Part shown: piece by piece, positions 58,097 to 64,000 of the stretch
Numbering within the stretch: position 1 is the stretch's first letter
How the letters are laid out: each line of letters opens with the position of its first letter
Source: Adineta vaga
Taxonomy: Eukaryota; Animalia; Rotifera
Direction of reading: 5' to 3'
DNA: 64,000 bases
Assembly (NCBI GenBank): GCA_021613535.1
Contig: CP075496.1
Location: forward strand, 10,850,001-10,914,000
Position numbers and translations under genes: made by a program
Notes under the pieces: generated by a model
The model's database searches: none
Told to the model about the DNA's origin: nothing
Seen by the model: only the letters and a program-made list of their open reading frames with translations

Positions 58097-58200
58097 TGAA
58101 GAACGAACAACAAAAACTGTACTGTTTTATTTGTGTATGATTTGAAAAGACAGGAAAGATGATGGGAAAAATGTTGTGTTTTTGTGTATGAATTCATCGA

Positions 58201-58857
58201 TTAAGTTGGTCGAAGATCGTTTGTATTCGATCTTCATCAATTAGGCCAGTAAATCGAGTGATTTCTTTTCCATTTTTGATTGCCACAACTGAAAAAAGTA
58301 TACACTAATTTATAAACTTATTTTCATGGGGAAAAATACAAATTTTAAATTTCTTTATATCCACTCGAAACTTCAAGAAAATGAAAGTGATGCATTTTGA
58401 TTTTTTTTGCTAGTAGTTTTACCTGTTGGTACAGCTTTAACATTGTATTTACTACTTAATTCGCTGAATTTATCTACATCAATCTTTGCTAATGCAATAT
58501 ATTGATCACCAGAAGACATTTTCACATTGTCATTGTAATCCGTAATTAATTTTTCTAATCGAGGTCCTATATAATACGACATAAAATGACAATCTGTGTG
58601 AAAACTACCTTGTTACCTAAAACTCTGCAGGGTCCACACCTTGTAGAAAGAGTATTTTTATAATTATTTTCATAGTAAAAGTCTTACCAACTAGCATGAA
58701 AATTCACCATCAATGGTTCTTTTTTATCAAGAACTTGTTTCTGGAAATCATCTTCATCTTGTACATGAAAAATATTATTTGAGAATCGTACTATCGATCT
58801 ATGAACTTGGGAAGAAACATTCTTCATGCATAAGCGTCGAGAACTAAGCAGTAACAT
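58201..58857 (-). CDS. TXN2: Mitochondrial thioredoxin
   Basis: Presequence [61 protein letters not shown]; four exons. Confidence 0.93.
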
Positions 58858-59159
58858 TCTCTTCAAATATAATGCATATATATATATCTATAAAATAATT
58901 TCATTCATACTGGTTTGTATTTATTTTTTCAATACAAAATAGAAAATAACAACAAATCTCTGCTTAGAATGCAGAGAAGAGTTCATAACAAATAGGTACA
59001 AAAAGTTCAAAAACAAACAAGAAATTCATACAAAAAATGCTTTGTTTTCAAAAAATAGTGAGAGAAACACACATACACATTTTCAATTTTATATACATAT
59101 CACAACTGTTTTTCATAAGTTGGAAGTATAATAAAGAAAAAGAAACAAAAAAATATATC

Positions 59160-62016
59160 TTATGTTGGACTAATGAGACGATTGGAAAATGGAAGACGTT
59201 TACTTGTTGTAGAAGACTGTTGAAAATCTGACGATGCTGACAATGAAGGAGTATTCAATCTGAAGGAAAAGAATGTATAGAAATGGAATAAAAGACTGGT
59301 AATTCTTACTTGATTGAATTGTCCGACGATGCGATTAACTAAGAGAAGAAAGTTAAAGATTATTTTAAAGTTTTATTACAATAAAAACTACATTACTTCA
59401 TTATCAATTGTAAACCAAAGAGACAAATCAGAGGCATATATTTGCGTAAATTTTGCCTTTTCTAATGCAAGAAATACGTTTGACACTGGAAAATGATACT
59501 GTTCCAGAATAGTTCGAACAAAATCGATTGAATATAGGATGATATTATTTAATGATCGGATATTAATTTGTGTAAATATATTCAAATGAGATTCACGTTT
59601 TATACGTACGGGATGATATTTAATAGCTAAAGCCTAAAGAAACAGAGAAAAGATATGTTTCTTTCGTATGAAATTTTATGTTCTTACATAATGTTTAATA
59701 GTATCAATATCAATATTTGAATGAATTAGTTTAAGTAAGGAACAAATATTGAAATCTGGTAGAAGAATATGTTGTTCATAATGTATAAAGAAGAGCGGTA
59801 TCTTTTGTTGTTGATTATTATTCATTTCTCTGTGAATATGAATGAGTTTAACAACAGGTTCATTTGTAATTGCTGTGCTATTGAGAACATTTGTACGAGA
59901 TAACAGGAGAGAACGTTTCAAAGTTCTAAAAAGCGAATAATTTTAATATTAATTGTAAAGTACAGAATGTAAATATGTAATATAGTACTTACTCTCCTAA
60001 GCGATTGTATAAAGCAATTACAGGATGTTTACATGAACTATTGTTAATGTTACTTGATTTGTGAGGCTAAATACGAATTTATATGATTAACAATTTCTCA
60101 GTGATTTAATGTGCGGATCGATGAAGATTCAGTGATTTTATTTTAAAAAAAAATAGCACATCTATTTGATAGAATCTAATCTTTAACTATCAGTTTCTTA
60201 CCCGAGTACTAATTTGTCTCGAATTATTGATATTTGTTGATTGTAAAATTGCTTTAGCTTTTTTTATATGTATCATATAATCATTCACGCAAACATATTG
60301 TCCTGAACTAGTTACAAATAGATTTGTTTGAAAACATCCATCGTTTCCAACTGATAAGAGTTCGATTTCTGGTAAAACTTGATCAATCACAGCTAAAAAT
60401 TGATCAGTTGCATCATCGAGCCATGTGACATTATCTTTAATATCTTCATCATTTATCGGTGAAATATGAGCTAAACGACATGTTAATGAAAAAACTAAAT
60501 GACGATGAAAATTATCAATTAAATATCTAAGACGATGTATGGGTACATATTCATCCCATGTGCCTAAATCAACATAAAATAAATTGACAGTATTATCAAT
60601 TGGATCGAAATCAAGAATTTGTGAACGATTCCAAATTTTATCATCATCAGATGATTTTGGATCAGCACATATAACACAAAGATTAATATGAATTTGTTCT
60701 GGTGTAACTAAATAGTCTTTGCTTTCAATTTCATTATAAAAATTATTCATTTCACGTTGAAATTTATCAAATTCAATAGCATCTTGTTTTAATTGGATAG
60801 TAAAACAATGAGGATTTAATGCTGCGATGATCATACATGCATGTGTTTGTTGAAGAAGATGATTAGGAATATAGAATTCATAAGAATAACGATTTGAAAC
60901 AATAGCTTGGTGTTTATATTCCAATGCTTTAGATAATTTGTCATCGGTAGTATTTTGACAGAATAAAATCTGTTCTGTTGCACATGTACTTGATTTTAAA
61001 CAAGATTTTGTTTGAGCAACAATTGTTTGTTGTGTCTTTGGTCGAACTAGAGAAGAAAATATAGTTGTCAAAATGCTCTATTAATATATTAGTTTTTCTA
61101 TTACCATTATTATCTTTTGATAAAGAAATATTTGTGTTGAAAGAAACACGTGGTGAATTCATAGATAAACGATGAGAAAATGATTGTCCTATAAATACAG
61201 CAATCATTTATGGATCTTTCAAGAAAAAATCTCTACGATTTTTAAACAAAATATTTACCATTATGAAAACGTAATCGATCTGTTTGTTTAATTATATCCT
61301 TTTCATCTTTATCGTCACAATCAATTAACATTTTACAAACTAATGTATAGCCATTACATAATTGTAGTACATATTCATTAACATAAATAATCGAGACTAT
61401 TTCTGATCGTTGAACAAATGTTAGTGCATCTTGAGGTTTTTCAAATATAACATGAATCTTTCCACTAAACGAATTTGTTGTTCGTGTAGATAGAAGCATT
61501 TTGATTTTACGAACAGGATAGAAACGATTGAAAAACTCTATTAAATCATTATATTGGGCATCACGTGGTAAACCATTGACAACAACAGTTTGATGTAAAT
61601 AAGGATTCTGTTCAATAGTTGGTTCAATTAAAGGTTGTCGTCGACGACGAAGACATACTGGTTCACATAGATCTAGTTCAATGATATTTGATCGTTTGGA
61701 ACGTAATGCATTAAGAATTGTATCATATTTATATGTTGATAATTTATTGAAATGATTTAATCGTTCAACTGGTATCCAACCATTATTATCACGTTCATAT
61801 TTAGCTAAGTTATAATCATTTTTAAGATTATCTTCCGTCAGATATGCTTCAACTATATCAAACAAACAACAATTAAAATGATGTAAAAACAAAGATTGCT
61901 CTTTTCGTATTTACGAAGGGTCTATTTTCTATAGATTATGTGTGTGTCATTCCGAATGAAATAAGATACTTACTCTGTTGAATGATTTTTGAATGTAACA
62001 CATCTATTTCGGCCAT
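59160..62016 (-). CDS. La-motif + RRM + extended Tudor fusion protein (~747 aa)
   Basis: Nine exons with matching phases: 62016-61974, 61852-61259, 61188-61105, 61046-60202, 60066-59993, 59925-59688, 59633-59397, 59338-59310, 59259-59160, total 2244 nt. La motif IIQQIEAYLTEDNLKND...GWIPVERLNHFNKL; RRM TVVVNGLP...FSGKIHVIF; Tudor NPHCFTIQ...WNRSQI...VNLFYVDLG...LRYL...TCRLAHISP. Confidence 0.8.
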
Positions 62017-62224: not shown

Positions 62225-64000
62225 TTAAAGTTCTTTTTTATCTTCATGTTCTTCTTTTTCAAGTCGTTGATGTTGTTCTGAAGATGCTTTAGGTTGTGTA
62301 CCCATACCAAGATCTTTATTAACAACTTGTTTTCGTTTTCCTTTTGGTCGTATTTGTAAAGTCATTATACCAATTAAATATAAGATTAATGTTACAATAT
62401 GACCAACAAAATATACACTCTTCCAATATTTCCATGTATAATGGAAATATTTAAGAATAAAACCAATGGACATATAGTCAAACATTCTTGTACGGAAAAA
62501 CCATGAACAAAAATCATAGACTCGGAGTAGTGGACTATTCTCTGGAATACGTCGACGTACACCAGCTTCCATGACATTTTCAGCAACAATACATGGTGTT
62601 GTAGTTACCATTCCCATATAATAACCCAAATGAATACCATGCCAATAAGCAGAAACAGACATCGTTGCTGGATGACTAAATAATAAGTAATATACATACA
62701 AGAATTTAGAAATTATTGATTAATATATGAAGTATACTCAAAGCAGCAGAGTTTCTTTTTGTCTAAATATCATTCTTTGTTATGTTTGATTAGTGAGTAT
62801 AATTCAAACTGAAGTAGCTATCTTCTTCGTGAATCTTTCTTAGTTTAGTCGTTTTATATAGGCATTCAGTGTTAAATAGGAGATGATCTATCATCCTTTG
62901 TTCTATATAGAAAAAACGTTTATCATACGCTATTTGACGCCATTTAATTCGTTTATAAACACATGTTGCCATCCAATATTGAACACTCATATTCCAGTAT
63001 CGTAGTACTTCTTTGACCGTTAATGCTGTTTCACATTTCCATTCATCTATGTTATGAATTGTTTCAAAATCATAACCAATTGTATTCGGTGCCTGTTCAT
63101 AACTAAAAAAAACATTTTTATAAATAAATAACAAAAATAAAATAGATAATTGAATTTAAACATACGCATGTTTTAATGCAACAAGATCTGTTGGACCTTG
63201 TCCTAAATAAAAGAAGATAGTTTTCTGTCACATATATTTATATATTTCAAACCTGGTCGTGGTTTACTAGCTAATGGATAGGCTCCAAAACCTCCTGCCA
63301 TACACATACATTCAGCTAATAACCAAGCGGAATAGAATCGAAAACGAAATAATGTAAATATTAATGGCATATAGAGTAATCGATACCAAAGTGGATTGTC
63401 ATAAAATTTATCATCTAATGCATCCTAAAGAAAAATAGATTCATTCAAAAAAGAAGAATCTTTTATTCATATTAGCGAGGCGTTACATTAAATGAAACCA
63501 TTGTTGAAAGAAGTAAATAAGTTAATATGTAAATTGAGCCAAAAATTACACGTTTTCTCATAAATGCTAGGCCATTAATATGCACTCCATGTTTCATTTC
63601 CAACCAATCATGATATGTTCGATAGCGATAATATGGACCTAAAGAATTGAATATTTGTATGATGAATATGAGTAAATTTAATTTTCGAAAAAGAATTACC
63701 AGTCAAAAGACCAATATAACAAAAAGCATACTGAAAAACTCTCCATGTCGTTGGTTTAACTGATAGATACATATCTTGCAGATGTAACTTCTCACTTTCT
63801 TCTGTATTTGGTTGTTGACGAATCGTTTTCAAACGTGTATATGAATCATGCCATTCAAAAGCTACTCCAACAAGCTACAAAAATATAATATTGTTACTAA
63901 TTCGAATGAATCTTTTCATTTTTTGTTTCCATACTTTCAATGTTAACATCAATTGAATCGCATTACTATGTGATACAGGTAATCGTATTGAAAACAAATT
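62225..64000 (-). CDS. MBOAT7: Lysophospholipid acyltransferase MBOAT7/LPIAT1 (5'-truncated by window)
   Basis: TLKLVGVAFEWHD, YAFCYIGLLTGPYYRY, FRFRFYSAWLLAEC, FETIHNID, WNMSVQYWM, catalytic SAYWHGIHLGYY. Confidence 0.93.

Follow-up and report, generated by a model that had tools for sequence, protein, structure and literature searches.

Can one gene join a La module, a unit that binds RNA 3′ ends, to an extended Tudor (eTudor) domain? The question is raised by a locus of the bdelloid rotifer Adineta vaga, which lies in a 64,000-nucleotide stretch of contig CP075496.1 (assembly GCA_021613535.1, positions 10,850,001 to 10,914,000) that we refer to as the window. From the letters of the window, an initial annotation had proposed that a La motif (LaM) and the RNA recognition motif (RRM) next to it are spliced in frame to an eTudor domain and an unassigned C-terminal region. 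We found a single nine-exon gene at window positions 62016–59160 on the minus strand, with 747 codons and a coding sequence of 2244 nt. Our overall explanation, which we consider probable with some reserve, is that the gene encodes a bdelloid-specific 747-aa fusion of La module, eTudor and C-terminal domain (C-domain) that would act as the RNA adaptor of a Tudor complex.

The La-Tudor gene and its reading frame

All nine exon translations run contiguously, end to end, through GenBank hypothetical protein I4U23_020644 of A. vaga chromosome C4 (747 aa; P0177), and the nine-part splice model first read from the window, with two phase-1 introns around an 84-nt exon, is therefore the deposited model. 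Exon 1 (62016–61974; all exons are on the minus strand) provides the ATG, the first 14 codons and one further nucleotide (P0177 residues 1–14), contains the start of the La motif (...KIIQQ) and ends at a phase-1 GTAAGT donor. Exon 2 (61852–61259, residues 15–213) encodes the remaining La motif, the interdomain linker and an RRM1-type RRM. Its La motif core lies at 61850–61698 (residues 16–66), as placed by alignment to the human La structure 2VOD and by the family table, and its RRM at 61586–61410 (residues 104–162), with the RNP2 and RNP1 sequences VVVNGL and SGKIHVIF. Exon 3 (61188–61105) is a linker exon of 84 nt (GQSFSHRLSMNSPRVSFNTNISLSKDNN) that runs from phase 1 to phase 1 between introns of 70 and 58 nt. 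It leads into exon 4 (61046–60202), which holds a pre-Tudor segment with the conserved motif CATEQILFCQN (60978–60952) followed by the eTudor domain, whose Pfam core spans 60849–60466. Introns 1–8 measure 121, 70, 58, 135, 67, 54, 58 and 50 nt, all eight with GT..AG boundaries, and introns 1, 2 and 3 are in phase 1; the window is AT-rich (G+C 28–35%). Domains were searched exon by exon, and the joined protein was used only as the database record P0177.

Relatives of the gene carry the same parts in one frame. A JGI metagenome contig (L026, 3586 nt) has a 497-codon open frame (P0182), 61% identical, in which exons 2–4 are uninterrupted. This contig is genomic DNA: it starts in intron 1, has the same phase-1 acceptor and carries a thioredoxin open reading frame (ORF) downstream. 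Its frame aligns collinearly with P0177 residues 15–515, without any insertion where introns 2 and 3 would lie, so that a single exon holds the Tudor domain together with the RRM and the linker peptide ‘KSFSNRLTNHSSRVSFNTNISLTDDN’. Similarly, a 414-aa frame (P0017) found on more than 20 environmental contigs runs from the LaM through the RRM into the Tudor domain with no stop. Gene models uniting all parts are deposited for A. ricciae, A. steineri, Rotaria magnacalcarata, R. socialis, R. sordida and two further Rotaria, and the identity of the linker peptide is 55–79%. In A. vaga itself, the ohnologue on chromosome C1 (L012, 2084–4829) has the same order of parts, phase-1 junctions, a homologous small exon (KSFSTRLANHSS...) and a downstream thioredoxin gene.

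Alternatively, the fusion could be an annotation artefact, in which gene predictors merged a La-RRM gene that ends in intron 2 with a separate Tudor gene. Left unspliced, intron 2 continues the frame to ...HNGKYFV-stop, 7 codons past the donor, and its retention would give a 219-aa La-RRM-only product, a possible isoform judging by the frame; the window copy also has an in-frame ATG in exon 3, and errors at the opposite end are frequent in the database models of the family, through extension into the thioredoxin gene (P0181 and P0185). By contrast, neither exon 3 nor the Tudor part of exon 4 offers an in-frame ATG in the C1 ohnologue; the first occurs close to the 3′ end of the exon, in ‘CVNDYMVHIK’, so that a separate start of the Tudor part is excluded there. 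The uninterrupted genomic frames, the matching and conserved intron phases and the conserved linker peptide argue against a merger as well, and we regard it as extremely improbable. We conclude from these sequence comparisons that the La-RRM and Tudor parts are one gene, in line with the single in-frame gene of the initial annotation.

Two further candidates were rejected. A continuous ORF from an ENA metagenome (P0186, 561 aa, from a prokaryote-style gene caller) does not count as separate evidence for the fusion, since its frame passes through introns 1 and 2, which leaves insertions of 19 and 17 residues at their sites. Nor is the gene a pseudogene, since its frames are unbroken and conserved across eight species. 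The GenBank model of the C1 ohnologue (P0020, 559 aa) skips from ‘GLPHDVR’ to ‘LCTKS’ and from ‘IARN’ to ‘DEHQ’, and so leaves out the small exon, the greater part of the RRM and a portion of the eTudor domain. All of these are intact in the DNA, and the model is probably wrong.

On the same strand, about 300 nt downstream, lies a thioredoxin gene (58194–58866; Pfam Thioredoxin, 25.6 bits), the neighbour retained beside the C1 ohnologue and in L026. The database models P0181, P0185, P0158 and P0160 wrongly extend the La-Tudor gene into it. The upstream neighbour, also on the minus strand, is an MBOAT-family acyltransferase gene (62225–63370, two exon ORFs matching PF03062) whose last exon ends about 210 nt ahead of the La-Tudor start codon.

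The La module and its RNA contacts

The La motif and adjacent RRM named by the initial annotation were both recovered in profile and sequence searches. On P0177, Pfam La matched over its full profile (1–59) at 33.4 bits (E 4e-8; gathering score 37.1) and RRM_1 matched residues 104–162 at 21.2 bits (cut-off 20.7). With phmmer, the closest solved relative of the N-terminal 215 residues was human La (2VOD, E 4.7e-15, residues 6–162), in an alignment that is unbroken across the LaM, linker and RRM1 and in which the LaM–RRM linker has the same length as in La. Other solved La-module relatives were weaker (LARP7, 2.5e-5; LARP6, 1e-4; LARP1, 3e-4). Pfam found neither RRM_3 nor xRRM in P0177 or its orthologues, where the Tudor domain stands instead. 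A winged helix of the LOTUS/OST-HTH kind, as in TDRD5/7, was considered for the N terminus and rejected; the match is to La through both the LaM and RRM1.

The only other La-module matches in the A. vaga genome were two genuine La ohnologues, L013 (C1:1558001–1567000) and L014 (C4:13314001–13323000), which consist of a LaM, RRM1 and a C-terminal part. The La-Tudor module scored 49.5 bits against A. vaga La and 59 bits against human La, and is thus no closer to the La of its own genome. These matches indicate that the module descends from a genuine La protein, namely from its N-terminal half. The two La genes lie in ohnologous blocks with a common kinase and a LIM/CRIP-like neighbour.

In human La, D33 binds the 2′/3′-OH of the last nucleotide and Y24 its phosphate, F35 stacks on the last base, and F55 is nearby and makes an apolar contact with the same base; Q20 reads the penultimate uridine and Y23 stacks on it (Kotik-Kogan et al. 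2008, PMC2430598). These six residues are highly conserved across La-related proteins (LARPs), LARP4A being the known exception (PMC6439165), and all six are intact in L013 and L014. We took the equivalent positions in the window protein from the phmmer alignment to 2VOD, and read variation from 14 family sequences, which fall into a group a (window type) and a group b (C1 type). D33 corresponds to D27, and is D in 13 of the 14; Y24 corresponds to Y18, which is invariant; N29, L30 and W46 (La numbering) are nearly invariant with them. Q20 is kept as Q14, which is Q in group a and in the A. steineri member of group b and D or E in the other members of group b, and F55 is kept as F49, a position that holds F, C, L, S or Y across the family. 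Y23 has become A17 (A, T or S in the family) and F35 has become N29, where seven residues occur (N, V, K, I, Y, T and H). The window protein therefore keeps four of the six, residue for residue as the initial annotation had read them by eye; family-wide, only Y24 and D33 remain.

Contacts between the two domains have changed as well. RRM1 of human La contributes N139, which positions Y23, and D125, which bridges to R57 (PMC2430598); in the window protein these residues are K130, N116 and K51, respectively. The aligned residues indicate that the module still grips ribose and phosphate, and that it has lost both platforms for base stacking, the clamp that RNA induces between the domains and, in group b, the reader of uridine. 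With the Y23 and F35 platforms and the N139 and D125 bridges gone, the module would not read UUU-3′OH in the canonical manner. The pocket departs from the canonical one; D33 and Y24 are kept throughout the family, however, and the ligand other than UUU-3′OH that was suggested earlier may therefore still be an RNA 3′ end.

The main rival explanation takes the La module for a relic that has given up RNA binding, its LaM and RRM serving as protein–protein or dimerisation surfaces and the protein as a multi-site Tudor scaffold. Family-wide variation at four of the six pocket residues, replacement of the N139 and D125 bridges and the reduced RNP aromatics are consistent with this possibility, as is a divergent relative (L024) that keeps the arrangement of parts without a detectable La or RRM signal; the RRM of TOFU-6, which pairs with PID-3, offers a precedent. 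By contrast, within group a the LaM (80–84% identity) and RRM (64–82%) are as conserved as the eTudor domain, D33, Y24, N29, L30 and W46 are nearly invariant, and the LaM–RRM linker has kept the length that it has in La. Moreover, LARP4A binds RNA without two of the six residues (PMC6439165). On this evidence we consider a relic module unlikely, and favour one that would still hold RNA.

The Tudor domain and the C-terminal region

As the initial annotation had claimed, the Tudor exon encodes an extended domain, the kind in which a Tudor core sits inside an SN-like fold. Pfam TUDOR matched P0177 at 36.9 bits (cut-off 23), and the closest solved relative of the exon was the eTudor domain of TDRKH/TDRD2 (E 2.6e-4). 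All 33 Foldseek matches of the Tudor-exon model at E<=1e-3 were eTudor domains (from TDRD1, TDRD2, Qin, Papi, Tudor, SND1 (Tudor-SN), Krimper and Spindle-E), each aligned over about 200–230 columns, and the TOFU-6 eTudor (9g6z) fell just above this threshold, at E 5.7e-3. The AlphaFold model of the exon was poor (predicted local distance difference test (pLDDT) 55.5), and we used it for fold class, not for pocket geometry.

The cage positions of the window protein read A/WNR/FYVDLGT. In alignment with TDRKH, WNR stands opposite WYR and FYVDLGT opposite YFVDFGD, and 24 family and paralogue sequences follow the pattern W-[NSFY]-R ... F-[YHF]-V-D-[LF]-[GN]-[TS]-W; both alignments agree with the reported replacement of a WYR/FVDYGN-type cage by WNR/YVDLGT. 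When mapped to the residues that we take to form the cage of SND1 (F740, Y746, Y763, Y766 and N768), one of four aromatic positions is left and the Asn has become Thr. These alignments indicate that the dimethylarginine cage is absent from the eTudor domain. The stretches ‘GTWEEYVP’ and ‘RSQILD’ near the cage are invariant, which suggests a different, conserved binding surface.

Residues 523–747 (about 225 aa) consist of a helix motif, HPV[IV]ALYNRLGE, a domain of about 135 residues and a C-terminal peptide, RLPFSNRLIxP; the helix motif is nearly invariant and the peptide invariant. Exon 5 (60066–59993) encodes the helix motif, which reads HPVIALYNRLGE in the window protein (P0177 residues 536–547; helix 15–36 of the structure model). 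Exons 6 and 7 (59925–59688 and 59633–59397, with a 54-nt intron between them) encode the C-terminal alpha/beta domain. Exons 8 and 9 (59338–59310 and 59259–59160) encode a disordered tail and the TAA stop, and the conserved peptide, here RLPFSNRLISPT, lies at 59198–59163 in exon 9.

This region had been left unassigned by the initial annotation, and at the sequence level it stayed so: Pfam matched no family at E<=10 in the C-terminal regions of 16 members, a profile of the region returned only a chance match to ribosomal eL14 among PDB sequences, an ESM Atlas feature search with it returned nothing, and a word search with residues 536–715 found orthologues only. At the level of fold, however, a model built from a 16-row alignment (core pLDDT 85–93) did give matches. 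The top nine PDB matches in Foldseek were all Dachshund homology domains (DHDs) of Dachshund, Ski or SnoN, the best being 1l8r (E 5.6e-3, probability 1.0, template modelling score 0.61 by target). VIA-align, run against 48,161 chains, gave the Dachshund DHD a Z of 7.9 (92 of 99 residues aligned, root-mean-square deviation 3.1), followed by the Baculovirus Orf22 N-domain (7.6), SnoN DHD (6.3), Bqt4 (6.2), Mbp1 APSES (6.0) and Swi6-N (5.1), all in the range under 8 that, according to the tool, can arise without homology. The ESM Atlas clusters for the domain were Phage_pRha, ORF6N, Bro-N and Ski_Sno_DHD. The stretch IPLFFIHYEQHILLPDFNICSLL presumably resembles the strand-turn ‘CLPQ’ region of Ski. 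The matches all fall within a single, coherent class of folds, and we provisionally place the modelled C-domain in this winged-helix-like DHD/APSES/KilA-N class.

The C-domain, the HPxxALY helix and the TEQILFCQN motif also occur in a second, La-less bdelloid family, found in bdelloids only, which likewise has a cage-less eTudor domain and a DHD-like C-domain. In A. vaga this family comprises P0190 (455 aa; chromosome C5, L016 C5:15125001–15134000), which starts with TEQILFCQN and lacks a La module, and a second copy, on C2 (L015, C2:2035001–2044000). The Tudor match of the C2 copy contains one TAG and one TAA, which may reflect introns or decay.

The fold of the C-domain raises the possibility that the protein works outside the piRNA pathway and the germline, for example as a nuclear RNA or chromatin factor with a DNA-binding C-domain, or as a general mRNP component. 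Domains that bind DNA are found in the fold class (Mbp1 APSES, Dachshund, Bqt4, KilA-N and Bro-N), and a Tudor domain without a cage gives no tie to methylated PIWI tails. By contrast, the structural neighbours of the Tudor part are all germline or piRNA eTudors or SND1, eTudor genes beyond SND1 are almost exclusively linked to piRNAs (PMC12147562), and the piRNA pathway is expanded in bdelloids. We therefore consider such a role very unlikely, and retain the small-RNA setting as the likeliest one.

Origin, proposed role and known systems

To determine how widely the architecture occurs, we searched with exon 2 using HMMER over 1.84 billion representative proteins, which gave 161 matches at E<=1e-3. 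Among the best 140 of these 161, a Tudor domain was present in four, all four in the La-Tudor family; the others were either fragmentary ORFs from that family or La + RRM_1 proteins, with RRM_3 in 66 and xRRM in 22 of the 140. Every named homologue is a bdelloid (Adineta or Rotaria). In line with the initial annotation, we found no La + RRM + eTudor family described in the literature, where the sole co-mention of La motif, Tudor domain and LARP among 8.4 million papers was an unrelated review; a 2025 survey of Tudor genes does not mention La (PMC12147562). GenBank and UniProt already contain La-Tudor proteins of eight bdelloid species in entries called unnamed or hypothetical, and some carry the automatic UniProt label ‘HTH La-type RNA-binding domain-containing protein’. 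The combination of an RRM with an eTudor domain is known from TDRD10, Vreteno and TOFU-6 (PMC12147562, PMC10711660, PMC10567574). The novelty is thus that of a family that is uncharacterised, not unseen, and the La motif alone is new.

A tree of the Tudor region, from which P0005 (a truncated model), P0185 and P0189 were left out, separated groups a and b, each with Adineta and Rotaria sequences; group b had a clade support of 82/99 and group a was unresolved at its base. The presence of both genera in both groups indicates that the fusion is older than the Adineta/Rotaria split and than the C4/C1 duplication. Within group a, which contains both genera, identity is 78–85% for the eTudor domain and 57–75% for the C-domain, beside the values given above for the LaM and RRM. 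Two relatives are more divergent and keep the arrangement of parts. In one (L025), a LaM-RRM ORF is followed 120 nt on by a Tudor ORF; in the other (L024, a Logan contig from SRR27500695, 3175 nt, about 40% G+C), LaM-like, RRM-like and Tudor parts, an HPxVELF helix and the C-domain follow in the same order. Judging by comparison, the gene may have arisen through the fusion of an eTudor + C-domain gene of the P0190 kind with a LaM and RRM1, the junction being today's boundary between exons 3 and 4. The core shared by the two families starts about 20 residues into exon 4, which fits the joining of LaM, RRM1 and linker exon via phase-1 introns. Alternatively, the paralogue may have lost its La module.

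In the reading that we favour, the protein would act as an adaptor between RNA and a protein complex organised by Tudor domains. Through its D33 and Y24 grips, the La module would bind RNA, at most sensing a 3′ end and with no uridine specificity. The cage-less eTudor domain may dock a partner independently of arginine methylation, like TOFU-6, Krimper eTud1, which binds unmethylated Ago3, and two of the Vreteno eTudors (PMC10711660), and the C-domain and RLPFSNRLIxP tail could provide further docking sites. The likeliest setting would be the small-RNA machinery of bdelloids, which have expanded Piwi and eTudor gene sets according to the survey of Tudor genes, where many lineage-specific, unnamed groups are noted as well (PMC12147562).

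Several points weigh against this proposal. The splice junctions rest on comparative evidence and the deposited annotation, the La match lies below its Pfam gathering score, and the RNP aromatics of the RRM are weakened (V and H versus Y and F in La). In group b, Y24 and D33 are the sole survivors of the six key residues, and in L024 Pfam detects neither La nor RRM. The sub-threshold match, the losses in group b and the loss of signal in L024 together mean that the module may not bind RNA. The C-domain match, with its top Z of 7.9, is in the grey zone and agrees with no sequence method. Furthermore, it is domain identity alone that would suggest a small-RNA or germ-granule role, and nothing ties the protein to Piwi in particular.

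To our knowledge, the LARP superfamily is divided into five ancient families whose partner domains are fixed. A more far-reaching version of the proposal is that the La-Tudor proteins form a sixth, lineage-specific LARP family, in which a La duplicate became the RNA arm of a Tudor scaffold, kept the D33 and Y24 grips, dropped uridine reading and passes the free 3′ ends of small-RNA precursors or target fragments to Piwi/Ago proteins that dock on the eTudor domain independently of methylation, with the La-less paralogue as partner or competitor; this version is, in our view, quite unlikely. A La module wired to an eTudor domain would be a new use of a 3′-end-binding unit, and a third way for Tudor scaffolds to gain an RNA handle, after KH domains (TDRKH) and the RRM (Vreteno, TDRD10 and TOFU-6). 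It is also a natural experiment, with the two residues for base stacking lost and the 3′-OH grip kept, set in an asexual lineage with expanded Piwi and Tudor gene sets (PMC12147562). The structure model further points to a bdelloid-only DHD/APSES-like domain that occurs in at least two Tudor gene families. As an uncharacterised, bdelloid-restricted hybrid of two well-known kinds of protein, LARP and TDRD, La-Tudor is a target for specialists in both LARPs and piRNAs.

How does the protein compare with known systems? It shares with genuine La (SSB/Lhp1; 2VOD and 1ZH5) a LaM and RRM1 joined by a linker of equal length, as well as D33, Y24, N29, L30 and W46; by contrast, the RRM2/xRRM and C terminus of La are absent here, and Y23, F35, N139 and D125 are changed. 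The Dachshund/Ski/Sno DHD and APSES/KilA-N/Bro-N domains have no counterpart of the helical extension of the C-domain or of its HPVxALY helix. TDRKH/TDRD2/Papi, which ranks among the top Foldseek matches of the Tudor exon, likewise combines an RNA-binding domain with an eTudor domain, but there the RNA is met by KH domains and the cage is intact and binds PIWI tails; in La-Tudor, A, N, Y and L occupy the cage positions and T replaces the Asn/Asp of TDRKH.

Closer in layout are Vreteno (Drosophila and Bombyx) and the vertebrate TDRD10, which also have an RRM with one or more eTudor domains but lack a La motif ahead of the RRM. Vreteno has a MYND domain and several eTudors, and the RRM of the La-Tudor protein is a La-type RRM1. 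Vreteno binds RNA through its RRM, and those of its eTudors that lack a cage are proposed to bind PIWI in unmethylated form (PMC10711660); TDRD10 consists of an RRM and a single eTudor, with unknown function (PMC12147562). Neither TDRD10 nor Vreteno appeared among the best 150 of the 161 La-module matches, in a general search that involved no direct comparison of the sequences, and orthology to either is unlikely. TOFU-6, of the C. elegans PETISCO complex, has an N-terminal RRM, then one eTudor whose aromatic cage is degenerated, and a short C-terminal binding motif, and serves as an adaptor in piRNA precursor processing, with a peptide bound on the SN-like surface of its eTudor (PMC10567574). 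It lacks both a La motif and a DHD-like domain, and uses its RRM for protein binding; it is not an orthologue. By analogy, TOFU-6 may nevertheless be the nearest functional counterpart of the La-Tudor protein, followed by the long isoform of Vreteno, whose RRM binds RNA.

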